The position numbers were made by a program, and so were the translations under genes. Under the pieces are notes generated by a model. The model was not told where the DNA came from. It made no database searches and saw only the letters and a list, made by a program, of their open reading frames with translations. Of a stretch of DNA of 64,000 nucleotides, positions 1 through 51,167 are shown piece after piece. The stretch's first letter is position 1. Every line of letters begins with the position of its first letter. This DNA comes from Haliotis rubra (lineage: Eukaryota). The stretch spans positions 372,001-436,000 of the forward strand of contig NW_025767038.1 in the NCBI RefSeq assembly GCF_003918875.1, written 5' to 3'.

Positions 1-669
1 TAATTGTTTCATCAAAGAGCACAGGGCAATATTTCAGATATTGCCACATACAAGGCCAGGTATTAAGTGAGTAGGGTTAGTTCCGTTTCAAATTCAGTTT
101 ACCCTGCTTGAATCGTGTTTACAGTACTCAGGTATACCTGGATACAGGTCACGTGAACATTTCAATTTGTGCCCATTATAGTCTGACAAAGTGCTATATA
201 TAATCAGCAAGTGCATATTGAAATTTTACAATATTTTAAAATAAAATGAGCACTTTATTAAATATTGCTGTTCGAAGGTCGTGTTATGTGCAGAGAGCAT
301 TTAAATAGAAGCGACAAAACCCTCCCACATCCCTAAGAAATCTCTGCTAAAAGCAGAGTCGATTGCAAAATTGTGACTATGTCATGAGTATACATTTGTT
401 TCAGCAGTATTACAGCTGTACGATGTTGTTTGTATACAAACAAGTCTTAACCAGTGACTATCACCATGCGATACGATGAATTGCATTGGACATCATTTGT
501 GTCACTGATGCATCAAATTTGGACTTTTCCTCCACATGTCTCCCATATAACTTGAAATAGTGATGATACAAGATCTTCTCGAAAAGGTGAGCGTTTCCGA
601 CCCCACTGGTGGCACCCGTCATAAACATATGCCAAGTCTCGTCAATTGTTCACCTGCAAGTCAAAATAG

Positions 670-850
670 GGAACAAGGGTGGCAAGACGCTCTTTGAAAT
701 TTTGATAAAAAGAACAAGCTCGATTGTACCCCAAAAGTTCTGAAATGTAAACACCAAAGGCTGGTGTTGTTGGAATATTGATCGATTATTGGAAAGTAGA
801 AATCATCCTTTTTGCCATAAAGCCTTGTGGAGAGTTATTTGTCTCTCTGA
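670..850 (-). mobile_element. Penelope-like retroelement reverse transcriptase C-terminal fragment (second copy ~13870-14030)
   Basis: Degenerate translation LSTRLYGKKDDFYFPII..NIPTTPAFGVYISELLGYNRACSFYQNF matches the PLE motif LYDKRDDFNFPI..NIP..PAYGVYISQLIRY.RAC. Confidence 0.75.
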
Positions 851-1497
851 ATCTTTATGCAAAACCAATTAGAAGTGAAAAGAGGGCCCAAAAAATACCG
901 AGTTTGTGTTTTCTGTAATGAACATTAATTTGAAAGAACTGATATTAAATATCTATCTAACCATCACTCATCCTTGCAACAGGTTGTAAACATACTTTCG
1001 TTTATTGATGACTACTTAAAAATATATTTTGTAACCATATGCCCATTCCACCTTTGTAATGCTTTATGCTTGTGCCTAAAAGAATACTGATTCTGAAGGA
1101 TAAGATGACAATGATACCTATCAACAGTTGTGTATCGTGTTGAATTTCTCAGTTGAAATTCCACCGAGAACATTAAGTGCTTATCAAGCGTGATATACTC
1201 ATAGAAACGAATAATGTAACACATGAAAGTATAAGTGTTCCTTTACATATTTTCAGAATTTCACTCACAGTGCAATATATACCTTGTGAAGAAACCTGGA
1301 AAAGAATAAAGGAGCACATGTACTTACATGTGTTCCCTTATTAGTTTCCATGAGTATATATTTTGATCTATAATGGATAGAACTCATAGACACTACAAGA
1401 TCGACGGTGCTAAGAGGAGCGGGCCACGCCAATATGTCACTTAAGATTCAGCCTTTTTCCAAAGCTGGACATCATAATTATACAGTTACTTGGGTTA

Positions 1498-1924
1498 AAG
1501 GGGTCGTTTTCGGCGCGGGTACTACTGTACCCTGTACAGAGAAACGTACCCTACCAAAATCGGAATACAGAAACTTATCTAGGGACGAGACCGAACTGTC
1601 ATACTATTGTATAAGATGCATTGGATTGTGTTATAAACTTAAACAAAACACACAGTGACAAATATTGCACGATGCACAGTGTCACTTGTAATGATGCGAA
1701 TGGAAGCTAAATAAACGCGATACACTTGTGATCCTATTTAAAAAATGATCAAATATAACAAAATTACATGATATATTTGGGATTACACTCAGTACAATGT
1801 AGACTCGTCTTCCGTTTAGGGTACCGGGCACGTTATGCATGCTGTCTTTGTTCAGCGTACACTTCCGCGTACAAAACGTACCTTGGGTACATATCTGTAG
1901 TACCCGTATCAACAACGACCCCTT
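1498..1924. mobile_element. MITE-like non-autonomous DNA transposon (second copy ~7709-8145)
   Basis: Imperfect terminal inverted repeats aaggggtcgtt...cgggtactac / gtagtacccg...aacgacccctt; no coding capacity. Confidence 0.65.
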
Positions 1925-2074
1925 CGGTGTTACTTGCTTGTTTGCGTTTCTCTGCTTCCCAGTTCGTGCCTCACCAGACACCATTATTTAATAAGATTTC
2001 AAACAGCTGGTGTCACTGATGGAATATTGCTCAAAGCGGTGTATATCCACACTCATTCACTCTTTCATGTAAAC

Positions 2075-2398
2075 CAGGGTCCTGATCCACAAAGCAGCGT
2101 TCGAAATCAACGTCCGTCTGTTGGACCGAAGGCGACAGAAAACCACTCGGAGCCACAGCTTTTGTTTTCTGCATACCCAATAACTAAGAGTCTTATTTCC
2201 ATATTAAAATATAGGGCCTGCACATTCTGATCAGGAAGCACAACTTTTTATGGTTCTGGGTCCTTAGTGCCTGCAGCTTTTTAGTGTTAAGGGCAAACAC
2301 TGCCACAAAGAATTCGTAACGATAAGCCTAAATTCAGTAGTTTATCATAGGCTTACAAATGTCGTAGCGCTATAAACGATTTGTGGATCGGGACCCTG
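2075..2398. mobile_element. MITE-like element
   Basis: TIRs cagggtcctgatccacaaa / tttgtggatcgggaccctg. The right TIR is deleted in the duplicate near 8600. Confidence 0.65.
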
Positions 2399-2724
2399 TT
2401 CATAACACGTTTCAGGCAAACCTTCTAATTAAACAAAGTGCACAAAGCAAAGAAGACGGTCAGTTGTTTATTGTAATTTGACGACCACGACGAAGAGAGG
2501 AACGAATTCTAAACAAACAGAAGCATGTGTTTGTAAACAGTAGAAATATGCACTGTTGTGCAGAGTATGCGCTGTTTCATACATAACAGCACACTTGAGA
2601 TTTGTCGTGTTTAATGATGTCCATCAGATCAAATCACTCTGAACAACTTGTTTTCTAGGAAGCCAGTCTTCATGAAACCCGAGTCCGCCACGTTTTACAG
2701 CAATATGTCTATTGCATTTGATCA

Positions 2725-3831
2725 CTAGTCACTGCCATTATCACCTCCGTCATCTCCACCGTCATCACCTCCGTCATCACCTCCGTCATCTCCACCGTCA
2801 TCCCCTCCTTCATCTCCAAAGTCATCACCTCCGTCGTCTCCACCGTCATCACCTCCGTCATCGCCACCGTCATCTCCACCGTCATCACCTCCGTCATCAT
2901 CACCTCCGTCATCACCTCCGTCATCACCTGCATCATCATTACCACCGGTTTCTCCGCTTGAATTATTTGCAGGTGGAGAAGCAGGTTGAGGGGCAGTTTG
3001 AGGGGCAGGTTGAGAAGCAGGAGCAGGTGGAGTTGCTGAGAAGATTATATTTAATTAGAAAATATTCCAAAACTACGAAACAAGGGCGAAACAAAGACGT
3101 ATGGAACACAGCTATATACAAAACTCATTATTGAGAAGGAAACACTATGGCTTTAAAATCCATAGATAAGACCATCAAATATAACGTCTCCAAAATATGA
3201 CATGATGATAACGGCAATCGGACGTTAATAAAGAAACATACACATTCATCATACCATCAGAATAGTATCACACTAAAAGGAAACCTTTTGTTTAGTGTAA
3301 TCAAACATATCTTCAAGGTTATATATACTACACATCCCTTGTGGGTATATTCATCCCTTTTGGATTGCAGTATTTTCTTATTGTCATCGCAGTGAAATGA
3401 AAACAGGGTCATTCTCCAAAGTAAGGTCAGAAATAAACAATAGAACTGTCATTCCGGGTTAATATGGACTTCTGAAATGATGGCTGCGCATCAACTGTTA
3501 CATCATCAGAAAGATACAATTTGAAGACACGTTTCATGACACCTTTAAACCATTTAATGTGACAGCTGTACTGTGCAGTTTCCAAAGAGTGTTTAAGTAG
3601 TATTGTGTGTATAAATGAAAAAGACAAGATCGTGCATATCTGGGAATCTGATACATCTGATAGTCGTAGAGACATCGACCGACGGATCATACACCTTCAA
3701 TTTACACACAAACGCTTTTATTCAGAGATGTAAACTATTCATTTGAACTCACTATCCTGGGCGTCACCCATTTGCCACAAGCAGGCAAATGCAAGCACAA
3801 CCGCCATGATCATAATTGTCTTGGTCCTCAT
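2725..3831 (-). CDS. Secreted Asp/Gly-rich (DDGG)n acidic protein, copy A, 129 aa
   Basis: Coding exons 3831-3753 (MRTKTIMIMAVVLAFACLWQMGDAQD, donor GTGAGT, phase 1) and 3035-2725 (acceptor ttctcag, stop TAG). Spliced product: MRTKTIMIMAVVLAFACLWQMGDAQDTTPPAPASQPAPQTAPQPASPPANNSSGETGGNDDAG(DDGG)2DDDGG(DDGG)5DDFGDEGG(DDGG)5DNGSD. Hydrophobic signal peptide, 34 Asp in the last 70 residues, AATAAA at 2472-2467. Confidence 0.9.
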
Positions 3832-4269
3832 AGTGACTGTTCCTCAGGCGTTTCTGAAATATATGGAACAAAACATATGTTTAAGCAAATGCCTGTCTGT
3901 CCTGGACTCATGCGCACCAGATAATCAGTTCGACTTACAATATCCATAATTATTTTTCGCATTAGTCCATACAGATAATGGTACTCTCTGATGGACGAAA
4001 ATACTAAAATCATGGGAGACCTGTCAAAAGGTAAGCGCAATAATGAAATATCAAACTAAATTAACAGGTAATGTACAGAGCCAAAAATGCAAGGTTTTTG
4101 AAATAACCAAGATAACTCTTCTGGTCTATTTGATATTGACACAAGGAAATAATATCAACAGATCTTCTAAGCAGCAGGCAGTAATATATATTGGGCTGTA
4201 AAGGTTGGTTTAATGAGCAGGTCATTAAAGAGGTCGGGCGTGAATTTATATATTTGCATTTTTTTGCAG

Positions 4270-5160
4270 CCATGTCACTAATTTAATGTAAAACCACCTC
4301 TATTGTTCACGAATGCCAGAATTCGTCGAGAGAAGCTTCTGATGAGAGTACCAATTTCAACTTGAGTCATGTTGTGCTACTGATCAGAGAGAACTGCATC
4401 AGGTTCACTGAGATGCCAATGACATGACAGCCGTGCTATATACTGGACTGGTCAGGGATGAATGTTGTCCATGACATGGCTGTGTTGCTGTTGGAGGCAT
4501 TAGAATACAAGCCGGGCATGACGAGTACGTGTATTGTCATCAAGAAAATGAAACGTTCAACAAAACGAAATGCAAATGACGCCAGGATTGCATCAATGAT
4601 CCATAGACAAAGTGGCAGGTCACACAGTCAGTATGACCCTCACCATGACACTACAAACCCACCATCAAACCGGTTTTGTTATATGACAACAACGTCCGTG
4701 AAACGTTCATTAGGACTTATCGAAACGCTTTTCTCGGGCCCTTGGTCATAAAAGTCGAGAATGAACTTCGATCCGTCAGGAAACATGACATAACCCCAAC
4801 ACCGATTATCCCAACGATGACGCCATAGGATGACACATGGAGGACGAGTACTCAGAGTATCTTCCGCAAGTAACAGATCTCATATCTGAGTGGTAGTTTG
4901 CAACAAAACCGATTTCGTAATGTCATCGTCCTCTGCCCGGGTGAAGATTTATGCCAAAGAGCGGTTGCTCATCAGCTGTATTTGACAAACTGCTGATAAT
5001 AGTCTGAGGAACTTTCAACGTTTGAGTAACAACGTTCTCATATGTGCGAGCCATGTCTTTGTCATGTAAACGTTGCAAACGACGCATGATCAGTACTGTT
5101 ACAATGCATTTAACAAAGAACCTTTGAGCGTTTTCTTCCAAGATAGCAATATACGTCTGG
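4270..5160 (-). mobile_element. Highly degenerate Tc1/mariner transposase relic inside intron 1 of the DDGG gene (second copy ~10450-11340)
   Basis: Broken translations WGYVMFPDGSKFIL, ERFTD..NRFDGGFVVSW and LIRSFSRRILAFVNNRGG match Tc1 motifs FSDESKF, RFGGGSVMVW and the C-terminal SMxRR...RGG. Confidence 0.7.
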
Positions 5161-5324
5161 TGACAATCTGATGTCCAAGAGTAATTCTGGCACACCACCT
5201 CTTGCACGTAGAGTCTGAGGTCACTCACCCACTCACTCACGTCCTCATAGCAAAGCGGTTTTGAATGAAACACAAACAAACATCAGAAGAATCTAAATAA
5301 TGAAACAAGCTAAGTTATACTTAC

Positions 5325-5394
5325 GATAGAGAAAACTGTCGCAGTTTATCAACTCTTGGAAGTGTAATGTTTCAATATTCCACACGTATATATA
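5325..5394 (-). promoter_or_regulatory. TATA box and short non-coding first exon of DDGG gene copy A
   Basis: GGTATATATA on the minus strand (TATA 5394-5387), then a ~40 nt exon ending in a perfect GTAAGT donor (5324-5319). A matching tttcag acceptor lies just upstream of the ATG exon. Confidence 0.7.
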
Positions 5395-6439
5395 CCTGTT
5401 TCTTTGACATGTGTAAATTTGAATAAGGTGGTCTTAATGGAGGTGACCTCTGACGAATCATACGTGTTTACACGTGTACTTTGTGTCGTAACAATGTCAA
5501 CATGTTAATATTAGTCGTGATTTTTTTGCACGAACGTGGCAACATCTGTGATCATACTTGATGACATTGTTGACACCAGGAATGTACTATTTTTGGAAAG
5601 AGGAATATTTTGTAAAAGATATCTGTTGTTTTAGGCACCGAAGATCTGTATGAATGAGTCAAACTTTAATCTGCTTTAAGAAATGTACCTGGATTGGATA
5701 ACCTATGGAAAAAGATAAGTTTCTGAATATTGATAATATTTCTATACTAAAACATATTTTACAGGATATGTACGCATGCCTGAATTTAATAACTTTTACA
5801 CTCGTAACGTGCCCAACTATACATTCCATATTATTCGGAATATGTTTTGGTGTTTAAATCTTACTGCCAGTCTAAGCGTTTCTTTACGAAAACATAATAT
5901 GTTTATTTTGAAAATGGCATATTTTCTTCCTTAAACAATCTCCTATTAGAAATGGTCAAAACTGCTTGAGCTTTATGAAAAGGTAAAGAGACCTGTCCAT
6001 CGGTTCTTGTTACAAGTGAACGAGTCAACTGGGTAACCTAAACTACTTGTTCATCTGGAATACACAATGTAGAGGCAGGATATCAGCGAGATGTGATCAC
6101 AAGGTCTGCTCAATTACATACGAGGTTTTCATGTGAATGGAATTTAGAATTTGGACCTTCGACTAACATATATTTGAAAATTAATGATATGTTGTTTACA
6201 CAAAGTACACAAAGTACCGATTTTAAAGATTTTGATGTTAAATATTCTATTATTTACACAGGCCTTTGAAAACAAATAGTATAATTTGTTGTTGGTCACA
6301 TGTCAGCACGTATTCCGACGTTCCCCAGTTTCTCCCTTTTCAAATATAATTGTTTTCATTGGTCAAAACTGACAATTGCTTGGCAACGTGTAGTTTATGA
6401 ATTAGAGCCACAGGTCAATTTGGGAGCCATGGGTTAAAA

Positions 6440-6920
6440 GGTCATGTCCAATAATAGGAACGTGTTGGAGACCGTGGACTTGATGTAAATTCCACTACTT
6501 GTGGCTGCGAAGACTCACATACCTGTTACCAAACTGTATGCCATGTAATGAAAGGTGACATCTGTATCATTGACAATAACACTCTTCGTAAGTTATACCA
6601 AGACAAGTGCGTCTTTTATGGACCAAAGTTTCGTGAGCAACCTCCCAACAATTGGGATTAAAACTTTAAGATAATTATGGATAGTACCAAAGCTTTACCA
6701 ACAATAACCTAAAGTGGAAAAGACACCTGCTAACTGACTTCCACTGTCGGTTGAGTGTTTGATGCTGCCATTAGTAGAATGAACAAAATGAAAGGGTGAA
6801 AACGGAATTGGAATAAACCTGTTTTGTTCCTGTCATCCAAGGTCTGTCGGCCCTACATGGAAAAAATTGTAGTTGTTCCCACTTAAAACGTCCTTTAATT
6901 GTTTCATCAAAGAGCAAAGA
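6440..6920 (+). mobile_element. Penelope-like element ORF fragment (second copy ~12620-13100)
   Basis: CGCEDS..CHVMKGDICIIDNNTLRKL..GPKFREQPPNNWD*NFKIIMD..KIVVVP resembles the PLE GHVITGDL.II.N..LR....GPKYRE...NW motif; contains stops. Confidence 0.7.
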
Positions 6921-8928
6921 GCAATATTTCAGATATTGCCACATACAAGGCCAGGTATTAAGTGAGTAGGGTTAGTTCCGTTTCAAATTCAGTTTACCCT
7001 GCTTGAATCGTGTTTACAGTACTCAGGTATACCTGGATACAGGTCACGTGAACATTTCAATTTGTGCCCATTATAGTCTGACAAAGTGCTATATATAATC
7101 AGCAAGTGCATATTGAAATTTTACAATATTTTAAAATAAAATGAGCACTTTATTAAAATATTGCTGTTCGAAGGTCGTGTTATGTGCAGAGAGCATTTAA
7201 ATAGAAGCGACAAAACCCTCCCACATCCCTAAGAAATCTCTACTTAAAGCAGAGTCGATTGCAAAATTGTGACTATATCATGAGTATAAATTTGTTTCCG
7301 CAGTATTACAGCCGTACTACGATGTTGTTTGTAAACAAATCGAGTCTGAACCAGTGACTATCACCATGCGATACGATGAAGTGCATTGGACATCATTTGT
7401 GTCACTGATGCATCAAATTTGGACTTTTTTCTCCACATGTCTCTGTTCCTTTATATATTTTCAGAATTTCACTCACAGTGCAATATATACCTTGTGAAGA
7501 AACCTGGAAAAAAATAAAAGGAACACGTGTACTTACATGTGTTCCCTTATTAGTTTCCATGAGTATTTATATTTGGGTCTATAATGGATAGAGCTCATAG
7601 AAACTACAAGATGACGTTGCTAAGAGGGACGGGCCACGCCAATATGTCACCTAAGATTCAGCGTTTGTCCCAAAGCTGGACATCATAATTATACGGTTAC
7701 TTGGGCTAAAGGAGTCGTTTTCGGGGCGGGTACCGCATACATGTACCCTGTACAGAGAAACGTAACCTACCAAAATCGGAATACAGAAACTTATCCAGGG
7801 ACGAGACCGAACTGTCATACTATTGTGTAAGATGCATTGGATTGTGTTATAAACTTAAACAAAACACACAGTGACAAAATATTGCGTGATGCACAGTGTC
7901 ACTTGTAATGATGCGAACGGAAGCTAAATAAACGCGAAACACTTTCGATCCCATTTAAAAAATGATCAAATATAACAAAATTACATGATAAATTTTGGAT
8001 TACACTATCTCAGTACAATGTAGACTTGTCTTCCGTTTAGGGTACCGGGCACGTTGTGCATGCTGTCTTTGTTCAGCGTACACTTCGGCGTACAAAAACG
8101 TACCTTGGGTACATATCTGTAGTACCCGTATCAACAACGACCCCTTCGGTGTTACTTGCTTGTTTGCGTTTCTCTGCTTCCCAGTTCGTGCCTCACCAGA
8201 CACCATTATTTAATAAGATTTCAAACAGCTGGTGTCACTGATGGAATATTGTTCAAAGCGGTGTATATCCACACTCATTCACTCTTTCATGTAAACCAGG
8301 GTCCTGATCCACAAAGCAGCGTTCGAAATCAACGTCGGTCCATTGGACCGAAGGCGACAGAAAACCACTCGGAGCCACAGCTTTTGTTTTCTGCATCCCC
8401 AATAACTAAGAGTCTTATTTCCATATTAAAATATAGGGCCTGCACATTCTGATCAGGAAGCACAACTTTTTATGGTTCTGGGTCCTTAGTGCCTGCAGCT
8501 TTTCAGTGTTAAGGGCAAACACTGCCACAAAGAATTCGTAACGATAAGCCTAAATTCAGTAGTTTATCATAGGCTTACAAATGTCGTAGCGCTATAAACG
8601 ATTCATAACACGTTTCAGGTAAACCTTCTAATTAAACAAAGTGCACAAAACAAAGAAGACGGTCAGTTGTTTATTGTAATTTGACGACCACGACGAAGAG
8701 AGGAACGAATTCTAAACAAACAGAAGCATGTGTTTGTAAACAGTAGAAATATGCACTGTTGTGCAGAGTATGCGCTGTTTCATACATAACAGCACACTTG
8801 AGATTTGTCGTGTTTAATGATGTCCATCAGATCAAATCACTCTGAACAACTTGTTTTCTAGGGAAGCCAGTCTTCATGAAACCCGAGTCCGCCACGTTTT
8901 ACAGCAATATGTCTATTGCATTTGATCA

Positions 8929-10012
8929 CTAGTCACTGCCATTATCACCTCCGTCATCTCCACCGTCATCACCTCCGTCATCACCTCCGTCATCTCCACC
9001 GTCATCCCCTCCTTCATCTCCAAAGTCATCACCTCCGTCGTCTCCACCGTCATCACCTCCGTCATCGCCACCGTCATCTCCACCGTCATCACCTCCGTCA
9101 TCACCTCCGTCATCACCTGCATCATCATTACCACCGGTTTCTCCGCTTGAATTATTTGCAGGTGGAGAAGCAGGTTGAGGGGCAGTTTGAGGGGCAGGTT
9201 GAGAAGCAGGAGCAGGTGGAGTTGCTGAGAAGATTATATTTAATTAGAAAATATTCCAAAACTACGAAACAAGGGCGAAACAAAGACGTATGGAACACAG
9301 CTATATACAAAACTCATTATTGAGAAGGAAACACTATGGCTTTAAAATCCATAGATAAGACCATCAAATATAACGTCTCCAAAATATGACATGATGATAA
9401 CGGCAATCGGACGTTAATAAAGAAACATACACATTCATCATACCATCAGAATAGTATCACACTAAAAGGAAACCTTTTGTTTAGTGTAATCAAACATATC
9501 TTCAAGGTTATATATACTACACATCCCTTTGTGGGTATATTCATCCCTTTTGATTGCAGTATTTTTTATTGTCATCGCAGTGAAATGAAAACAGGGTCAT
9601 TCTCCAAAGTAAGGTCAGAAATAAACAATAGAACTGTCATTCCGGGTTAATATGGACTTCTGAAATGATGGCTGCGCATCAACTGTTACATCATCAGAAA
9701 GATACAATTTGACGATTCATGACACCTTTAAATCATTTAATGTGACAGCTGTACTGTGCATTCCAAAGAGTGTTTAAGTAGTATTGTGTGTATAAATGAA
9801 AAAGACAAGATCGTGCATATCTGGGAATCTGATACATCTGATAGTCGTAGAGACATCGACCGACGGATCATACACCTTCAATTTACACACAAACGCTTTT
9901 ATTCAGAGATGTAAACTATTCATTTGAACTCACTATCCTGGGCGTCACCCATTTGCCACAAGCAGGCAAATGCAAGCACAACCGCCATGATCATAATTGT
10001 CTTGGTCCTCAT
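8929..10012 (-). CDS. Secreted Asp/Gly-rich (DDGG)n acidic protein, copy B, 124 aa
   Basis: Exons 10012-9934 and 9224-8929. Same protein as copy A except for an in-frame 15-nt deletion (DDDGG) in the repeat. Confidence 0.9.
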
Positions 10013-11499
10013 AGTGACTGTTCTTCAGGCGTTTCTGAAATATATGGAACAAAACATGTTTAAGCAAATGCCTGTCTGTCCTGGACTCATGCGCACCAGA
10101 TAATCAGTTCGACTTAAAATATCCATAATTATTTTTGGCATTAGTCCATACAGATAATGGTACTCTCTGATGGACGAAAATACTAAAATCATGGGAGACC
10201 TGTCAAAAGGTAAGCGCAATAATGAAATATCAAACTAAATTAACAGGTAATGTACAGAGCCAAAAATGCAAGGTTATTGAAATTACCAAGATAACTCTTC
10301 TGGTCTATGTGATATTGACACAAGGAAATAATATCAACAGATCTTCTAAGCAGCAGGCAAAAATATATATTGGGCTGTGATGGTTGGTTTAATGAGCAGG
10401 TCATTAAAGAGGTCGGGTGTGAATTTATTAATTTGCATCTTTTTGCAACCATGTCACTAATTTCATGTAGAACCACCTCTATTGTTCACAAATGCTAGAA
10501 TTCGTCGAGACATGCTTCTGATGAGAGTACCAATTTCAACTTGACTCATGTTGTTCTACTGATCAGAGAGAACTGCATCAGGTTCACTGAGATGCCAATG
10601 ACATCACAGCCTTGCTATATACTGGACTGGTCAGGGATGAATGTTGTCCATGACATGGCTGTGTTGCTGTTGGAGGCATTAGAATACAAGCTGGGCATGA
10701 CGAGTACGTGCATTGTCATCAAGAAAATGAAACGTTCAACAAAACGAAATGCAAATGACACCAGGACTGCGCCTAAGATCCATAGACAAAGTGGCAGGTC
10801 ACACATTCAGTGTGACCCTCACCATGAGACTACAAACCCACCATCAAACCGGTTTTGTTATATGACAACAACGTCCGTGAAACGTTCATTAGGACTTATC
10901 GAAACGCTTTTCTCGGGCCCTTGGTCATAGAAGTCGAGAATGAACTTCGATCCGTCAGGAAACATGACATAACCCCAACACCGATTATCCCAACGATGAC
11001 GCCATAGGATGACACATGGAGGACGAGTACTCAGAGTATCTTCCGCAAGTAACAGATCTCATATCTGAGTGGTAGTTTGCAACAAAACCGATTTCGTAAT
11101 GTCATCGTCCTCTGCCCGGGTGAAGATTTATGCCAAAGAGCGGTTGCTCATCAGCTGTATTTGACAAACTGCTGATAATAGTCTGAGGAACTTTCAACGT
11201 TTGAGTAACAACGTTCTCATATGTGCGAACCATGTCTTTGTCATGTAAACGTTGCAAACGACGCATGATCAGTACCGTTACAATGCATTTAACAAAGTAC
11301 CTTTGAGCGTTTTCTTCCAAGATAGCAATATCTGGTGACAATCTGATGTCCAAGAGTAATTCTGGCACACCACCTCTTGCACGTAGAGTCTGAGGTCACT
11401 CACCCACTCACTCACGTCCTCATAGCAAAGCGGTTTTGAATGAAACACAAACAAACATCAGAAGAATCTAAATAATGAAACAAGCTAAGTTATACTTAC

Positions 11500-11569
11500 G
11501 ATAGAGAAAACTGTCGCAGTTTATCAACTCTTGGAAGTGTAATGTTTCAATATTCCACACGTATATATA
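11500..11569 (-). promoter_or_regulatory. TATA box and non-coding first exon of DDGG gene copy B
   Basis: TATATATA at 11569-11562 and GTAAGT donor at 11499-11494, same as copy A. Confidence 0.7.
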
Positions 11570-14500
11570 CCTGTTTCTTTGACATGTGTAAATTTGAATA
11601 AGGTGGTCTTAATGGAGGTGACCTCTGACGAATCATACGTGTTTACACGTGTACTTTGTGTCGTAACAATGTCAACATGTTAATATTAGTCGTGATTTTT
11701 TTGCACGAACGTGGCAACATCTGTGATCATACTTGATGACATTGTTGACACCAGGGAATGTACTATTTTTTGGAAAGAGGAATATTTTGTAAAAGATATC
11801 TGTTGTTTTAGGCACCGAAGATCTGTATGAATGAGTCAAACTTTAATCTGCTTTAAGAAATGTACCTGGATTGGATAACCTATGGAAAAAGATAAGTTTC
11901 TGAATATTGATAATATTTCTATACTAAAACATATTTTACAGGATATGTACGCATGCCTGAATGTAATAATTTTTACATTCGTAACATGCCAAACTATACA
12001 TTCCATATTAATCAGAATATTTTTGGTGTGTTTAAATCTTACTGCTAGTCTAAGCGTTTCTTTACGAAAACATAATATGTTTATTTTGAAAATGGCATAT
12101 TTTCTTCCTTAAACAATCTCCTATTAGAAATGGTCAAAACTGCTTGAGCTTTATGAAAAGGTAAAGAGACCTGTCCATCGGTTCTTGTTACAAGTGAACG
12201 AGTCAACTGGGTAACCTAAACTACTTGTTCATCTGGAATACACAATGTAGAGGCAGGATATCAGCGAGATGTGATCACAAGGTCTGCTCAATTACATACG
12301 AGGTTTTCATGTGAATGGAATTTAGAATTTGGACCTTCGACTAACATATATTTGAAAATTAATGATATGTTGTTTACACAAAGTACACAAAGTACCGATT
12401 TTAAAGATTTTGATGTTAAATATTCTATTATTTACACAGGCCTTTGAAAACAAATAGTATAATTTGTTGTTGGTCACATGTCAGCACGTATTCCGACGTT
12501 CCCCAGTTTCTCCCTTTTCAAATATAATTGTTTTCATTGGTCAAAACTGACAATTGCTTGGCAACGTGTAGTTTATGAATTAGAGCCACAGGTCAATTTG
12601 GGAGCCATGGGTTAAAAGGTCATGTCCAATAATAGGAACGTGTTGGAGACCGTGGACTTGGTAGTTCATGATGTAAATTCCACTACTTGTGGCTGCGAAG
12701 ACTCACATACCTGTTACCAAACTGTATGCCATGTAATGAAAGGTGACATCTGTATCATTGACAATAACACTCTTCGTAAGTTATACCAAGACAAGTGCGT
12801 CTTTTATGGACCAAAGTTTCGTGAGCAACCTCCCAACAATTGGGATTAAAACTTTAAGATGATTATGGATAGTACCAAAGCTTTACCAACAATAACCTAA
12901 AAGGAAAAAGACACCTTCTAACTGTCTTCCACTGTCGGTTGAGTGTTTGATGCTGCCATTAGTAGAATGAACACAATGAAAGGTTGAAAACGGAATTGGA
13001 ATAAACCTGTTTTGTTCCTGTCATCCAAGGTCTGTCAGCCCTACATGGAAAAAATTGTAGTTGTTCTCACTTAAAACGTCCTAAAAATTGTTTCATCAAA
13101 GAGCAAAGAGCAATATGTCAGATACTACAACATACAAGGCCAGGTATTAAGTGAGTAGGGTTAGTTCCGTTTCAAATTCACACCCTGCTTGAATCGTGTT
13201 TACAGTACTCAGGTATACCTGGATACAGGTCACGTGAACATTTCAATTTGTGCCCATTATAGTCTGACAAAGTGCTATATATAATCAGCAAGTGCATATT
13301 GAAATTTTACAATATTTTAAAATAAAATGAGCACTTTATTAAAATATTGCTGTTCGAAGGTCGTGTTATGTGCAGAGAGCATTTAAATAGAAGCGACAAA
13401 ACCCTCCCACATCCCTAAGAAATCTCTACTTAAAGCAGAGTCGATTGCAAAATTGTGACTATATCATGAGTATAAATTTGTTTCCGCAGTATTACAGCCG
13501 TACGATGTTGTTTGTAAACAAATCGAGTCTGAACCAGATAATCCAGTGACTATCACCATGCGCTACGATGAACTGCATTGGACACTGATGCATCAAATTT
13601 GGACTTTTCCTCCACATGTCTCTCATATAACTTGAAATAGTGATGACACCAGGTCTTCCCGAAGAGGTGAGCGTTTCCAACCCCACTGGTGGCACCCGTC
13701 ATAAACATATGCCAGTTCTCGTCAATTGTTCACCTGCAAGTCAAAATAGGGAATTGCATGGGACTTTATGTTTATGACTGATGCATCAAATTTGGACATT
13801 TACTTCTCATGCCTGCCATAACACTTATTGACAGATTTACTGAGGCCTTGAATGATGTATCCTTGATCGAACAAGGGTGGCATGACGTTCTTTGAAATCT
13901 TGATAAAAAGAGCACGCTCGATTGCACCCCAAAAGTTGGTGCTGTTGAAATATTGCTCGACTATTGGAAAGTTGAAATCAACCCTTTTGCCATACAGCCT
14001 TGTGGTGGGTTATTTGTCTCTCTGAATCTTTATGCAAAACCAACTAGATGTGAAAAGAGGGCCCCAAAAAATACCGAGTTTTTTGTTGTTGTAATGAACA
14101 TTAATTTAAAAGAACTGATATTAAATATCTATCTAACCATCACTCATCCTTGCAACAGGTTGTAAACATACTTTCGTTTATTGATGACTACTGTAAAAAT
14201 ATATTTTGTAACCATATGCCCATTCCATCTTTGTAATCCGTTATGTTTGTGCCTAAAAGAATATTGATTCTGAAGGATAAGATGTCAATCCGCCGCCATA
14301 TATAGCTGGGATATTGCTGAGTGCGGCGTAAAATTAAACTCACCCACTCACTCGATAAGATGTCAATGATACCTATCAGCACTTGTGTATCGCTTTGAAA
14401 TTCTCAGTTGAAATTACACCGAGAACATTAAGTGCTTATCAAGCGTGACAGTGAACTACTGAAACCAGTGGAATTCCTGTTGCGTAGATATGTGAATGTG

Positions 14501-16632: not shown

Positions 16633-16672
<40 letters not shown>

Positions 16673-16736
16673 ATGTGCATGTGCGTGTGTATATGCGTAT
16701 GCGTGAGTGCGTGTGTGTGTGTCTGTGTGTGTGTGT
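16616..16736. repeat. (TG)n compound microsatellite
   Basis: Long pure and interrupted TG runs. Confidence 0.95.
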
Positions 16737-17034
16737 TTTCACCACATGGGGATTCCTGGGACAAAATGGTCCCAAGTGTCATATGATTGTAATCAGTGCC
16801 GGCTAAAGGGGATTGGATGACCATCTGTCGGTGGATGGCATGGTGTGTGATGTGGTTTCAGTCACTGGCGTATCTGATCCGAACAGTCAGGATATAGAAG
16901 GACTGTTACTGAAATACCTTCAGCAACATTCACTTACTGACATGTACATTGACAGACATACAGGAGCATTGATTAGGCCAAAAACTAAAATAGTATATAT
17001 ATTATACGTTGACATTCCTGGGAAAAACATACCA

Positions 17035-17458
17035 TGATCTCCCCGCCGACCCTCGATCTCCACCGCCTCTCGATTCCCACCGACAATCGTTCCCTAACAA
17101 CCCTCGCTCTCAAACGAATCTCGCTCCATAACCACCCTCGCTCGCCAACGATGCTCATTCCCCACCGACCCTCGCTCCCAACCCAACCTTGCTCTCAACC
17201 GACCCTCACTCCCTACCCAACCTTGCTCACCACCGTTTCCTCGATCCCTACCCAACCTTGCTCTCAACAGTCCCTCGATCCCTACCCAACCTCTCAAGCA
17301 GATCTCGCTCCCTACTCACCCTCGCTTGCCAACGACTCTCATTCTCAACCGACCCTCGATCCCTATCCGACCTCGAGCTCGCTCCCCACCGACCCTTGCT
17401 CCCTACCAATTTTTAGGTCCATCGACCCTCGATCCCTATCCAATCTTGCTCCCCAAAC
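17035..17458. repeat. C-rich ~18-19 bp minisatellite (ccccaccgaccctcgctc-like); second block ~18138-18248
   Basis: Directly visible tandem degenerate units. Confidence 0.85.
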
Positions 17459-19622
17459 CGAAACATGAGTCTCATTAACCTATTCAGACAATGACCTACT
17501 TTTCTGCCGATCCGAATTTTCTCGTGTGAAAGTGAAAATAGACATCACAAACATCTATGGTTACACTGAATTCCAATTGTTTCTTTCATCAGAAAATGAT
17601 AGTTACAATGTATTTTAATTTTAAACATTAATAACATCGTATTTCTATATTTTATGGCGAGGTGTAGGCAGCATGACCTTAACTAAGACGTCACAGACTG
17701 CCCCTGTTTGATGAGGTCGTAAAATGAATCACAATGCATCTGGCTTATTGGTTACATCTGTTATGTGTTTTGTGTGCTTATGTAGTGCAGTTCTGTAACG
17801 CACAGTGTGTTTGATATAAGATCAAGTCCGTACCAGACCGCCAAACTTTTCTAGCGGGAGAGCCTCGTTTTGAGATTTCCACGATTTCCAGGTTTCCGTT
17901 GAAACAGCTCGCTGTACGATAGAGCACGCTTCACGACGTGTTTGCAAGGATTAGAAGGAGCGTAATGTTGCAATATACAAGTGCTTAGATGTATCAAATA
18001 ATACTGATTATTAATTATGTATCCAGTCAAATGAATTGGTCTCAACCTTCTGGATTGGTTATTATACTAATTTGCGCAATAGGACGGGACCCAGTCAACA
18101 GGAAACGACACTGTTGCGTAATCAATGTTTTGACTTGGCCGACCCTTGATCCCCACCGACCCTCGTTTCCAAAACACCGACCCTCGCTCTCTTCCCACCC
18201 TGGGTCTCCACCGACCCTCGCTCTCTACCCACCCTCGGTCTCCACCGGTTTTCAATTAAATCGATGCTATTTTCTGAAGAACCTGCAAACTGAAAATTGT
18301 TTCTGCAGAAACTAGGACCTGCCCAACATCACCTATTCACACACATGTAGATTAAACTATAGTTCCATATGGATGCATATACGCACGAAAATGTTAAATA
18401 GTCAACATCGATTTAAACGCTTTGTAGAGAATTTGTAATATTGGATTTCTGAAATGAAGTGAATTCAAATTGTGGTTCATTATCATGACGGATGTAAACG
18501 GAATTGTTGCATGTGTTTTTATGTTCGTTAGTATCGATTGTGGAACATATTGTGCTCAAATTGATACATTAAGATGGCGTAAATGAGTGTTCAAAGTGGC
18601 CATTGTTGCTAAAGTTCTAGTGAGTCAGCAGTATCAGGAACTCAAGCGAGATGTCCACGTGTTGTTTCCGTGGTTGGTGCACAGTGCACTGTTTGGATCG
18701 AGCTTGTACTGACTGCTTGGATTCCCACACTACTATACCAATCCGCACACGACACACACAACATCTGATGCAATTCATGTCCTTGCCATGCGATAACACT
18801 GCTCCCCTTTCCTATTTTCTAGTATATTATTCTGTTTATTCACGTTCTTTATTTAACTCAGAAACTCAAAATTATAAAAACCAAAGTTACAAGATGGACA
18901 AAGGTAAATATGTAAATGATAATTACAAAGAAAAATATTGTGATGTTATACAAATATACAGACACGCATCATAATTAAAGGAATTGTCTTAAGTGATGTA
19001 CAATATACATGCAGTTACAATCATTAACAATCAATTGGATCCAAAATAATTTGTTTACATGACAACTACTTTTTGACAATGATTGGCGTTATTTCTCGTT
19101 TTTGCATTATTTATATTTCATTCACATTGTACATTTATCATGACATGTTAACTGTTCCTTACATTGTATCCTGGAGCGGTATTCATATAGGATTATGCTT
19201 GTTTACCAATCCGCTTCCCTTCATTGGAGATAAATATGTTTAAATCAATCAATTATCGTACAAGCAAATGCGAAGTGTGTAAGATGAGGTAATATAAGAA
19301 AATAATAGAAGAGACAAGTCTGTCTAAATTATGTACGATGCCAATGTCAGTGTATGTATGTATGTATGCATGTATACATCGGATATCCGTAAAAAAAATG
19401 ATCAAATATGTAAATCCGTTCAACTAATATTTACTGAAAGAGAAATGAAAGATGCCTCTAAAATCGCTTCTGGTTCATGGTAATAACTCTGCATCAAATT
19501 GGTTCAAGATAATCCACAATACTGGAAATTTGGATGGCTTTTATGTTACAATATGCAACTGTCATTTGATAGCAACATTCCAGCATGTCCAGTCTATAGT
19601 GTCTACGTTTCATTACCCGCGA

Positions 19623-37725: not shown

Positions 37726-39645
37726 TTACTTCATCTCCAGTTCATACATTTCTTCAGAGAGGTCGGGGTCACCTAGATGTGTCTTTGTTGGGAACGTTGT
37801 ATCGTCGGTGACATCATCATCTTTAAATGAAAATGACAATGAACTAATATCAGAGAAGACAGCTGTTGACATACTGGTTATGAATATGATTAGTACCAAT
37901 ATACTAAAAAATAATAAAACTATATAATGCGTTCATATATATTACTAAGACTTTCGACAGTGTCTGGAAACTTGGCTTAGTGAAAGTTAGTGAAATATTG
38001 CTTACAGGAACATTGTAGAGATTGAAACAACATACGACCTACGTAGCTAGTCAAGGTTAACATTTATCTCCTTTGCTATTTTCAACAGTTACGATGTAAA
38101 TTACCTATAACATTTTACTTTTTTTATACATGGCTGCAAAGGGTTGGATATTAAAAGTTTGGACGATGGGAACATATTTACATGTGGTGCACTCCATTCT
38201 TGCTGATACTATATGCTAATGGCGTTGTCTCATTACGAGAAGACCTTGCATCTCCTGAAGCTACTTTCTAAGTTTTATGTGTTATTGAAGTGCAAAATAT
38301 TGCAAAAAAAACCCCAAACACCCAAACTCTCTGACATTGTAATGTAAGACATTACAAAAGTCGACGTATTTTTATCTTAGGCGACGAAGACATTTATGTA
38401 AAACATCATTGCGCCTAATTATGTTCCGTCAAAAGAAACAACATTTCAAAACGATAAAAACTTCAATTTGTCGAAAACCATTAAAAGCTAATTTATGTCT
38501 ACTAACGAATCCACAAAATACTACCTATAGTCAACCTCTCGATTCTCGTTTAATATCTGTAGCATGAGGGTGCACGTATATGTTATAGATCAGAGGTATG
38601 GGGTTTTGTAAACATTGATCAGCAGCGCTTGCCTTCTGTAAAACGACAGATCAAGATTCGCTAGGCGTTCTCCTGATCCGACCGTTTATTGGGTGTCCGC
38701 AGATCTCAACACAGAGTAGCATTGTGCTTGTGTGTTGTTTGACTCCACACTAAGCATTATTACAGCTAAGGGACGACGGTTGTAAACACACCAGACCGAA
38801 CCCGGCTATCCATTGGTTCTGGGGAACGTGCAATCTTAACCGAAATCCCCATAGTATCGTTATGCAGGGAGGTACCTTAAGGTGTAAAGCAGATTCTTGG
38901 GAGATTACGACAGATAGCTTCCAACACCAACGACAGAGTCAAGTTCAAGTGTAAGGCGGTCATAATGTGTGGCCAGTCTTATTGCCTGTTATAGTACATC
39001 GACGACTTGGGTTAGAATATGTACCCAACACAATATATATACCCAATTTATGTACCCAATTGCTTGTGGCAGTCGTCCTTTTGACTTCCGAGTGGTTTGT
39101 CTGTGCGTCTTTTAGTGTTGTGTGAACACTATTTTCTTTATCGATGAATCAATTCAGAGGCGTTGAATGAACGAGTGCCAAGATTACAGGTGAATTATTG
39201 ACAAGCAAAGGACAGATTTCATAGCGAATATCAAATTGAGTCATCCGTTAATTGACAATTTCTTTGCGAGTCACAAAAAATGCATGATTTTATTCCCATG
39301 TTTTGGGGGCGGCCTGTAGTTATCAAATCCCAACCAATGATTGATCGTCGTCGACCTGTACCATGACAAAGAATAAGTATCGCGTCAATTATTTTAGCAC
39401 CCGACCATAGCTTTGTTGGGTATTGTAAGGATGATGATTGAACATCTTTGTTGCAATTGTATTTTACCAGATTCAGTAGTGTCTTCAGTTGTGTCTTCAG
39501 TCGTGTCCTCGGTGTCGTCCTCAGTTGTGTCCTCCGTCGTATCCTCGGTGTGGTCCTCAGTTGTGTCCTCAGTAGTGTCCTCCGTTGTTTCAGTGTAGGC
39601 CAGGTGGAGGAACAATCCCAAGAAAAGGAGAAGTCTCAGTTTCAT
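37726..39645 (-). CDS. Secreted (TTED)n Thr/Glu/Asp-rich acidic protein, 90 aa
   Basis: Exons 39645-39468 (MKLRLLLFLGLFLHLAYTETTEDTTEDTTEDHTEDTTEDTTEDDTEDTTEDTTEDTTES, phase 1) and 37820-37726 (DDDVTDDTTFPTKTHLGDPDLSEEMYELEMK*). AATAAA at 37626-37621; acceptor before the ATG at 39668-39667. Confidence 0.88.
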
Positions 39646-40468
39646 GGTGTCTTTTTCGTATTCGTGCTGTAAGGTTAAGTTACAAAGCATGGTAAAGAGA
39701 TCAGGAATATGGCGTGATAATTCTGAAGTGCGATGTGTGCCCGTGTCTTGTATATATATGTGTATGTGTGTGTGTGATTGCATGAAATAATTCCGTTTCT
39801 TTTTGTGTCAGGCCACTGCCATATCATTCTAGAGTTAATCGTCCTCTTATTATGCTAATTCCGAGCCAACGGGTTCGCGTTCTCAACAACGCGGAGAACC
39901 AAGAGAGATACCGACAAGAACCATCATTTATCGCATTTTGGTACTGTCTGGAACGGCATCGAAGCAGCGACATTCTAATCTATTCAATATATCCAAGAGA
40001 CAACTCAGGTGTATGTATTATGTTATGTACAAAATAATTATGTAAAGCTGATGATATCTGCAGATGTAAAATACATTTGATGAATTACAGGACATTCAAT
40101 GCTCGCCATAGAATCAAGCTGATTAATCAGCTACACTTCTTTCCGTAGAGATCAGATTTACAAACTTCGCTTCCTCGTCAGATGTTCAATTTTTGCGTCA
40201 ACTAATCATGTTATTACATTCACATTTATACTAGCTGCTTATGGTGTTTGGCCTGTGGTAACATTATCCACAACTGGCAAATTACATTATTTCTAGTCTC
40301 AAGAGAATTATTTACCATCATCTGAAGTCATTTCCTCATTTTGATCTCCTCTTTCCAAAATGTATTTCTTTATCATTGTTGAGATACAGAACAAGTAACC
40401 ATAGTTTTCCTATTGTTCTAATCCCTCCTTTAGTTTGTAAAACTGTGAGAGACATATGTCATACTTAC

Positions 40469-49690: not shown

Positions 49691-51167
49691 CACTCTTCCA
49701 ACACAAATGAAAGTTGGTACGCAAATGTCAAATCAAGCATGTTTTGAGGATTGAATATTGCTGTTGGTATGGTTTAGAAGAACATGCGTGAGCGAATGCA
49801 ACCATAAACAATTTTGAATGGTTTTATTGACCATGATTGTCATGATGAGCTTGACTGGTATGGAATACAACCAAAAGCCGCAATTATAGCTTTTTCGCGT
49901 GCAACCTATGACTATAAAATACCCAAATGTATGTCCTAAATTCACCCAGGACCCTTGCAAATATTGGATGAGAAAATGGGACGTCTCAGCGATGCCCACC
50001 GAAATATTGCCATTGGACGATTACAAGCTGGCGAATCCAAGAGTGTCGTGGCGAAGACCTTCAGCGTTCATCCCAGCACAATACCTCGTTTGTGGGATCG
50101 TTTTGTGCATTCCATTTCGACAAATGACCAACCAAGACCAGGAAGACCGTGAGTCACCACACAGCCCAAGATCGATACATCCGGGTAACCCAATTACGTG
50201 ACAGCCATCATTCCGCCCGGGACACTGCACAAGAACGGTTTGTAGCCCGGAGAATGTCCGACCAGACAAAGAGGAACCGTTTCCGAGAGGTAGATATGCG
50301 TGCCAGACGTCCACAAGTTGAACCCTCTCTGACACGATTACATCAACGTCCGTGAGTCAGGTGGTGTAACGCGGTGCACTCATTGGCCTTGGAAACTGGA
50401 CGCACATGTGGTTTAATGATGAATCGCGGTATCCCCCAAAGCAACGTGACGGAAGACAGCGTGTCTACAGACCACGGAAAGAACGTTTTGCATCCAAATG
50501 CATTAAGCAAGTGGACAGATTTGGTGGAGATGGTGTGATGATGTGGGGAGCTATGTCATGCACCTGCAGATCGGAATTGGTGCTCGTCCAAGGCAATCTA
50601 AATGCCGCGAGATATATCGACCAGATTCTCTGTCCTCACGTGCATCGTCTTGTCGACCGCCAAAGGGAGCTGTACCACCAGGACAACGCCAGACCTCACA
50701 CAGCACGTGCTACAGTGGACTACCTGGACAAAAACAACATCAGTGTCCTCCCCTGGCCCTCCAGATCCCCGGATCTGAAACCAATTGATTATGTGTGGGA
50801 TCAGATAGATAACCGTGTACGTCAACATCGTAATCCGCCATTGAGGCTTTAACAGTAACTGTTGTTAAACATGCTGCAGGAGGAATGTAGGATTCCACAA
50901 CGAAACATCCAACAACTGATTCAATCTGTGTCAAGGAGGTGCCGTGCAGTTCTAGCAGTAAGAGGTGGCCCTAGAAGGTAGTAACGTCAACGTCACCTCG
51001 TGGACAGCAGTAATGACTATGATGACTATCATTCTTTGAAGTGTGTACGAGATACCAACGTATTGCTCTACATAATTTCAATGCTCAACCGTTTATTTTC
51101 GTTGATTTACATAACTGAATAAGTTTTCAATGATATTTTGCTTTTGCGTTTCTTTTTTTGAAGAGTG
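49691..51167 (+). mobile_element. Full-length but inactivated Tc1/mariner transposon
   Basis: TA-flanked ends cactcttc / gaagagtg; transposase ~49976-50983 (MGRLSDAHRNIAIGRL..HTH; WFNDESRY; HQDNARPH; SPDLKPIDYVW) with stops and frameshifts. Confidence 0.92.

Follow-up and report, generated by a model that had tools for sequence, protein, structure and literature searches.

A spliced, highly transcribed gene for a predicted secreted (DDGG)n protein, a candidate soluble shell-matrix protein of abalone

Gene structure and transcription

The DNA analysed here is a stretch of 64,000 nucleotides (nt) from contig NW_025767038.1 (assembly GCF_003918875.1, positions 372,001 to 436,000), referred to below as the window. 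Its minus strand carries a gene in which a 12-nt tandem repeat encodes a chain of Asp-Asp-Gly-Gly (DDGG) units. All positions are window positions. The window is AT-rich (GC content 0.32-0.43) and plainly that of an animal genome in character; an Rfam scan of the whole 64 kb gave no match. The repeat array was delimited with Tandem Repeats Finder at 2740-2938 (16.3 copies, plus-strand consensus ATCACCTCCGTC), and a second, shorter 12-nt array was called at 2969-3021 (4.4 copies), corresponding to the linker region of the protein.

A search of sequencing runs returned nine matching runs from four organisms and three studies, each matching in a small share of the sampled words. Contigs of four of these runs were aligned to 2400-4300; the runs were taken as RNA on the guess of the search tool. 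Runs X2 and X6 originate from different organisms and different studies, and the contigs are unstranded.

The gene was modelled with the following elements, all on the minus strand. A TATA box (TATATATA, 5387-5394, read in the sequence) lies about 25-30 nt upstream of the putative transcription start. Exon 1 (5325-5368, 5' end approximate) is a non-coding part of the 5' untranslated region (UTR), placed by its match to the tail of the RNA contigs and followed by the donor GTAAGT at 5324. Intron 1 (3854-5324, GT-AG) ends in the acceptor TTTCAG at 3856-3854 and has a contig depth of about 3 or 0, compared with thousands in the exons. Exon 2 (3753-3853) consists of 22 nt of 5'UTR, the AUG at 3831-3829, the signal-peptide codons (3831-3760), codons for Gln and Asp and the first base of a split codon; translation of 3831-3754 gives a Met-initiated hydrophobic leader of 26 residues. 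Intron 2 (3036-3752, phase 1) reads GTGAGT...CTCAG and is absent from the spliced contigs of X2 and X6. Its GT lies at 3752-3751 and its AG at 3037-3036 after a pyrimidine-rich tract, giving a phase-1 junction 3753/3035.

Exon 3 opens with a Thr/Pro/Ala/Gln/Ser linker, the NNSS sequons and GETGGN (2939-3035, from the translation and the repeat call). The (DDGG)n array follows at 2728-2938, with 17 units and a final Asp; one unit has 15 nt (DDDGG) and the end units are degenerate (DDAG and DNGS). The stop codon TAG was read at 2725-2727. Taken as one open reading frame (ORF), 3033-2725 in the third minus frame thus runs from a Pro/Ala/Gln linker through ANNSSGETGGN and DDGG-type units to DNGSD and the stop. 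The 3'UTR extends over 2450-2724 (3' end approximate), with AATAAA at 2472-2467, and the contigs reach 2455 (X6) and 2478 (X2 and X5).

Re-reading of the minus strand confirmed all coordinates given by an earlier annotation made from the letters and their ORFs (the sequence-only reading). Its description of the product as a signal peptide, a Pro/Ala/Gln linker, NNSS and about 15 DDGG units agrees with the translation, in which 15 interior DDGG-type units were counted among 17 units of four residues. The decoy ORFs that it attributed to the 12-nt repeat were also found, namely a His/Arg-rich frame on the plus strand (2712-3134, 140 residues) and a frame of MTEV repeats on the minus strand (2709-2945, 78 residues). 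Its two-exon gene model had to be extended, as the RNA contigs show a third, upstream non-coding exon at about 5368-5325. The locus is a three-exon, TATA-driven, minus-strand animal gene, probably of an abalone, that is present in two tandem copies and encodes a preprotein of about 129 residues.

Transcription was assessed from the contigs aligned to 2400-4300. Exon depth summed over bins was 2,500-27,000 in X2 and 9,000-149,000 in X1; contigs over the introns and the upstream DNA had depths of 0-3.5. This contrast of three to four orders of magnitude looks like abundant mRNA over a faint background of pre-mRNA or DNA. Positions 3754-3850 were covered at a depth of 4746 in X2 and 53 in X6, and in each of these two runs the contigs connect 3754 to 3009 via 15 intervening letters. 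The reverse complement of these letters, GCAACTCCTCCTGCT, consists of the split-codon base (G, where the window has A) and bases 1-14 of exon 3, which carry a single synonymous change. The contig is therefore read as an orthologous mRNA whose linker lacks 12 nt in frame, which places the exon-exon junction exactly at 3753|3035. The sequence-only reading had named the lack of a 3753/3035 splice as a refutation, and the splice is present in the contigs of both X2 and X6.

At the other end, the match of the X2 and X6 contigs stops at 3850 and is followed by about 47 further letters unlike the adjoining DNA. Within this tail, a stretch of 21 nt has matches in the window at 5325-5345 and 11500-11520 and nowhere else (0 expected by chance), and the match at 5325-5345 is flanked by the GTAAGT donor and the TATA box at 5394-5387. 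Both introns are GT-AG on the minus strand only, so that the strand is fixed despite the unstranded contigs. The gene is spliced and very highly transcribed.

Reading frame and predicted product

The AUG at 3831 is the first of the mRNA and has A at -3; exon 1 and the exon 2 leader contain no ATG. Under the scanning rule this start fixes the DDGG frame. As had been proposed from the splice phase and the signal exon, the phase-1 junction 3753/3035, when read from AUG 3831, runs into DDGG.

For comparison of the repeat units, the array was divided into 17 units in the DDGG register with the consensus GAT GAC GGA GGT. Third codon positions hold 18 of the 23 differences between unit and consensus (p = 1.3e-5 in a binomial test with an expectation of one third), and 15 of 17 when only the 15 interior units are counted. 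Sixteen of the 23 differences are synonymous in the DDGG frame, and the residue is changed in 5 of 68 codons (A, F, E, N and S). Because the variant GGT GGA recurs four times, the units cannot be treated as independent; counting separate events by hand still places about nine of 14 at third positions. Read in the MTEV or His/Arg frame, almost every one of these unit differences replaces a residue (for example by swapping E and V). On the plus strand, a frame reading (SPPS)n at 2728-2945 is uninterrupted, has its third positions in common with DDGG and is equally invariant.

The tally of synonymous and non-synonymous differences thus narrowed the six frames to two, DDGG and SPPS, and did not single out DDGG. 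The claim that mostly synonymous variation indicates selection on the DDGG peptide holds as far as the synonymy itself is concerned; as a proof of strand it was discarded, since the antisense SPPS frame gives the same result. The DDGG frame was chosen over SPPS because of the splice polarity, the AUG and the signal peptide. Sense/antisense pairs of the DDGG/SPPS kind make tests based on third-position variation blind to strand.

The orthologous contigs provided a further comparison. Their indels relative to the window are 12, 9 and 3 nt in coding sequence, plus three 1-nt gaps in the same low-depth contigs, and 1, 1, 3, 2, 2 and 2 nt in the UTRs and introns. Coding indels in multiples of three support the coding frame weakly, as a 12-nt repeat with a 3-nt sub-periodicity favours such lengths in any case. 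At the residue level, relative to the window, the contigs have Asp for Asn in NNSS (2964), Ala for Thr at the split codon (3753), Val for Ala in the signal peptide (3791) and a four-residue deletion in the linker (3010-3035); the linker and the sequons therefore vary between species and the DDGG period is kept.

The N-terminal leader has a basic n-region (MRTK), a hydrophobic core of 15 residues (mean Kyte-Doolittle value of about 2.5, counted by hand) and a polar c-region ending in G-D-A. Cleavage of a 24-residue signal peptide is predicted after Gly-Asp-Ala (Ala at -1, Gly at -3), which would leave Gln at the mature N-terminus; earlier cleavage, after A-F-A, is possible and would leave the properties of the chain unaltered. 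From this leader the product is inferred to be secreted. Composition was summed over the separate exon pieces, and the searches and folding were likewise performed exon by exon. On the assumption of cleavage after G-D-A, the predicted mature chain has 105 residues and a mass of 9.57 kDa, with 33.3% Asp, 32.4% Gly, 8.6% Pro, 6.7% Ala, 37.1% Asx (Asp plus Asn) and one aromatic residue. Its net charge is about -37. The composition count bore out the expectation that the mature chain has no Lys or Arg, and there is also no His or Cys.

The chain contains three N-X-S sequons (NNS, NSS and NGS) and a Thr/Ser/Pro linker of the O-glycosylation type; the linker carries predicted N-glycan and probably also O-glycan sites. 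AlphaFold2 returned no secondary structure for exon 3, with a mean predicted local distance difference test score (pLDDT) of 60 and a predicted template-modelling score (pTM) of 0.16. This model indicates an intrinsically disordered chain.

Relatives were searched for at several levels. Pfam gave zero families at E <= 1 for both coding exons, and in particular no EF-hand or other Ca2+-binding domain. A word-index search of 5.8 billion proteins with exon 3 gave only two chance low-complexity matches, and the ESM Atlas gave no usable match. An exhaustive HMMER search of 1.84 billion representative proteins gave nine matches (E from 4.5e-6 to 8.4e-4); the five inspected, the best included, are unrelated proteins with D/G runs and were rejected as relatives, and a sixth, P0001, is a chance low-complexity match. 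Comparison of the gene with the rest of the window (blastn/tblastn) revealed no paralogue beyond the two copies, and showed that the signal exon is not common to the neighbouring acidic genes in the window. The decoy ORFs, together with a TTED-repeat ORF and a transposase ORF described below, were looked up exactly in the protein collection and none was present. Literature searches for DDGG strings or an aspartate- and glycine-rich protein yielded nothing relevant. A bacterial promoter/terminator scan of the promoter region was disregarded as irrelevant for an animal gene. The protein is apparently absent from public protein sets, which fits the earlier description of its frame as 'unannotated', judged here from protein searches only.

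Second copy and other features of the window

The 12-nt arrays recur at 8944-9127 and 9158-9210, as part of a whole 6.2-kb unit that is repeated in tandem (1-6896, 6897-13085 and the partial start of a third unit at 13086-13753, 92% identity). The window starts inside the tandem array, and further copies may lie before position 1. The coding part of copy 2 (8929-10012, minus strand) comprises exon 2 coding sequence at 10012-9934 and exon 3 coding sequence at 9224-8929, and its exon 1 was placed at 11500-11543 (minus strand, 5' end approximate) by the match to the RNA-contig tail. The coding sequence of copy 2 is the same as that of copy 1 except for a 15-nt in-frame deletion the size of DDDGG. 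Its predicted mature product has 100 residues and about 9.11 kDa, derived by hand as copy 1 minus DDDGG.

Over 5.66 kb the two copies differ at 105 substitution sites and by 22 indel events. Of the 105 substitutions, a single one falls in an exon, in the 5'UTR (p = 8e-6). The copies diverge by 1.6-3.5% in intron 1 and the flanks and by 0-0.3% from exon 2 through intron 2 to exon 3 and in the promoter. Within the promoter, the block 5369-5600 agrees with copy 2 at every aligned position.

Copy 2 might instead be an assembly artefact, with two haplotypes placed in tandem and a single gene whose two alleles differ in length. Heterozygosity is high in abalone genomes, and the coding sequences are identical but for one indel in repeat length. 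We consider this doubtful in view of the substitutions and indel events just given, the mismatch of up to 3.5% in the flanks and the 92%-identical third unit start at 13086-13753. The question touches the copy number only and not the reality of the gene.

Other features were noted elsewhere in the window. A small secreted acidic repeat gene occupies 39394-39783 and 37726-37870 (both minus strand), with a signal-like MKLRLLLFLGLFLHLAYT followed by about ten TTED units; it contains 12- and 36-nt repeats at 39473-39588 and has no sequence similarity to the DDGG gene. Arrays with periods of 17, 34 and 85 nt at 17034-17468 and 18175-18247 carry a plus-strand open frame rich in Pro, Ser, Thr and Leu, and may represent simple satellite DNA or belong to an exon of a further repeat protein. 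A (TG)50 microsatellite is located at 16636-16736. A remnant of a Tc1/mariner-type DDE_3 transposase is present at 50406-50852 (plus strand, Pfam E = 8.4e-12). Its sole named relative is an uncharacterized protein of Haliotis rufescens (56% identity), which lends weak support to an abalone origin of the DNA. Runs of N, either gaps or masked sequence, at about 31.8 kb and 60.0-60.4 kb fall inside ORF listings.

Shell-matrix assignment, alternatives and related proteins

By analogy with known proteins, we consider it fairly probable, with moderate confidence, that the product is a soluble, unusually acidic shell-matrix protein. This assignment was preferred because the protein is predicted to be small, soluble and secreted, because Asp and Gly make up two thirds of its residues, and because its RNA is very abundant and the gene probably belongs to an abalone. 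Asp- and Gly-rich acidic proteins are a recognized class of the mollusc shell matrix, and its soluble acidic members are considered regulators of nucleation and growth that bind Ca2+ and crystal surfaces (PMC6003135; PMC11583211). In a mechanism of this kind, Asp pairs placed every four residues on a flexible Gly backbone would be low-affinity, high-capacity sites for Ca2+, adsorption of the chain would take place at CaCO3 step edges, and the adsorbed protein would modulate nucleation and crystal growth. The glycosylated linker could act as a spacer, or it could anchor the chain to the matrix.

Several points weigh against this assignment. Binding of Ca2+ or mineral and delivery to the shell are proposed by analogy, the Ca2+ binding being read from the composition. 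The very high RNA depth in X1 and X2 comes from runs that carry no tissue identity, and the contigs are those of relatives about 95% identical to the window rather than of the window's own organism. Substitutions between species amount to 4/73 and 4/97 letters in the coding contigs and to 8/177, 10/215 and 13/307 in the introns; coding divergence (about 4-5%) is no lower than that of the introns, and there is no signal of constraint outside the repeat. Such a pattern also fits a fast-evolving secretome gene. The block of low divergence between the two copies includes intron 2, which suggests that gene conversion or homogenization of the block fits at least as well as purifying selection. Finally, the DDGG string is absent from all 28 supplementary files of the H. 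laevigata shell proteome.

The last of these points has to be read with the method used. The H. laevigata shell proteome was obtained with trypsin only, and its authors give a lack of trypsin sites as a cause of missed proteins. A chain that lacks Lys and Arg would be expected to escape trypsin-based shell proteomes, and the prediction that tryptic proteomics could miss it is in line with both the result and the blind spot named by those authors. The protein is likewise absent from the H. asinina shell protein list, which is also trypsin-based, and, with the H. laevigata study included, the DDGG string is absent from the supplements of two abalone or mollusc shell papers.

The main rival to a shell-matrix protein is a real, secreted DDGG protein with a non-shell role, for example as a cation buffer, as a polyanionic part of mucus or some other secretion, or as a product specific to a gland or to gametes. 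The gene-level evidence (splicing, frame and composition) applies equally to this alternative, and the lack of tissue identity of the expressing runs and the silence of the published abalone shell proteomes both speak for it. The neighbourhood also holds other small secreted acidic repeat genes, for example the TTED gene at 39.4 kb. Against it, a small, soluble, acidic protein dominated by Asp and Gly is the classic soluble matrix of the mollusc shell (PMC6003135, PMC11583211), and the proteomic absence is what a Lys/Arg-free chain would give. On balance a non-shell role is possible but somewhat unlikely.

It is very unlikely that the locus is transcribed and spliced without DDGG being its product, that is, as a non-coding RNA, through the MTEV frame or as a microsatellite left open by chance. 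Five of the six frames are open across the array (one minus frame is closed by 29 stops), the DDGG product is known here from nucleotide sequence and not from a peptide, and no homologue found in the protein searches backs any frame. The first AUG, however, with A at -3, opens a textbook signal peptide from which the phase-1 splice leads into DDGG; the MTEV ORF begins only at an internal GTG. The unit differences that are synonymous in DDGG are almost all non-synonymous in the MTEV and His/Arg frames, and the coding sequence shows indels in multiples of three both from species to species and from copy to copy. Selection on the antisense SPPS frame, although this frame is free of stops on the plus strand and as invariant as DDGG, can practically be dismissed, as only the minus strand gives both introns GT-AG borders, the exons of the spliced contigs follow one another in minus-strand order, together with the TATA box, AUG, stop and AATAAA, and no start codon, signal sequence or splice context was seen on the plus strand.

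The closest functional match to the DDGG protein is the pair AP8-alpha and AP8-beta. Fu, Valiyaveettil, Wopenka and Morse are said to have reported these acidic proteins of about 8 kDa in 2005 (in Biomacromolecules 6:1289, cited in PMC6003135), purified from the nacre of Haliotis rufescens. Their masses reportedly are 8.7 and 7.8 kDa, and their composition reportedly is about 35 mol% Asx and about 40 mol% Gly. We know of no published sequence for AP8, and the literature searches brought up none. AP8 resembles the DDGG protein in being a small, soluble, acidic abalone protein, with a predicted 37.1% Asx and 32.4% Gly here to be set beside the reported figures, and in existing as two isoforms where two tandem genes are found here. 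It differs in coming from another species, H. rufescens, and Gly is lower here than reported for AP8. The predicted unmodified masses of 9.57 and about 9.11 kDa are about 0.5-1.5 kDa above the reported AP8 masses; the 12-, 9- and 3-nt deletions of the orthologous contigs would shorten the products. From the literature, the AP8 nacre proteins are 'extremely acidic' (PMC4951644, PMC4260845), bind Ca2+ and modify crystal shape (PMC12938370). They reportedly have served as a model of crystal modification.

That the two tandem genes encode AP8-alpha and AP8-beta is put forward tentatively, as an identity we would not yet bet on, from a comparison by reported mass and composition in place of an AP8 sequence. 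If this identity is true, the two AP8 isoforms would be explained by tandem genes that differ in repeat number. An AP8 gene of this type would have stayed hidden since gene callers would prefer the decoy frames or skip the repeat and short-read assemblers would break at the 12-nt array, and the chain, Lys/Arg-free and probably blocked by pyroglutamate, would escape both tryptic proteomics and Edman sequencing.

Other acidic shell proteins were compared in the same way. Aspein (Pinctada fucata) and Asprich (Atrina rigida) share with the DDGG protein a signal peptide, an Asp-dominated low-complexity domain and a very low isoelectric point, and are thought to control CaCO3 nucleation and growth (PMC6003135). 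They differ in having up to 75% Asp in poly-Asp runs broken by Ser-Gly, where the present chain has 33% Asp in a strict D-D-G-G period, and in belonging to the calcite-associated prismatic layer of bivalves; no sequence similarity to them was found in the protein searches. MSP-1 (Patinopecten yessoensis) is a secreted shell glycoprotein with alternating Asp-rich and Gly/Ser-rich repeat modules (PMC2989941), but it is large and modular with basic domains, whereas the DDGG protein consists of one short array and lacks basic residues altogether. Shell proteins with repetitive low-complexity domains (RLCDs) evolve rapidly and in a lineage-restricted manner (PMC1676022). The H. laevigata shell proteome has only two Asp-rich entries, idb_22086 (36% Asp) and Tri_57798 (25% Asp, with a poly-Asp run of 55 residues). 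These are of the same genus and are acidic, disordered tandem-repeat proteins found in the shell; they differ in being longer (one >309 residues) and in having given tryptic peptides. In its sequence the DDGG protein shows the marks of the composition-defined class to which Aspein, Asprich and AP8 belong, with a secretion signal, Asp-dominated low complexity, strong negative charge and predicted disorder.

The class itself is already known; what is new here is an expressed gene for an unusually acidic, repetitive secreted protein with a strikingly regular unit. Since the 1970s, soluble proteins rich in Asp and Gly have been put forward as regulators of crystal growth in mollusc shells. The most acidic shell proteins are also the hardest to sequence, and the locus provides a concrete gene for a minimal, perfectly periodic polyanion of about 15 DDGG units that is free of basic residues. 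The DDGG sequence is a test molecule that can be synthesized for experiments with calcite and aragonite, and the predicted chain gives a target mass for top-down proteomics of abalone shell. The locus further illustrates a systematic blind spot, in which a repeat is open in five frames, the RNA comes out of short-read assembly in fragments and the chain offers trypsin no cleavage site. The two genes also offer a candidate identity for the orphan AP8 nacre proteins.

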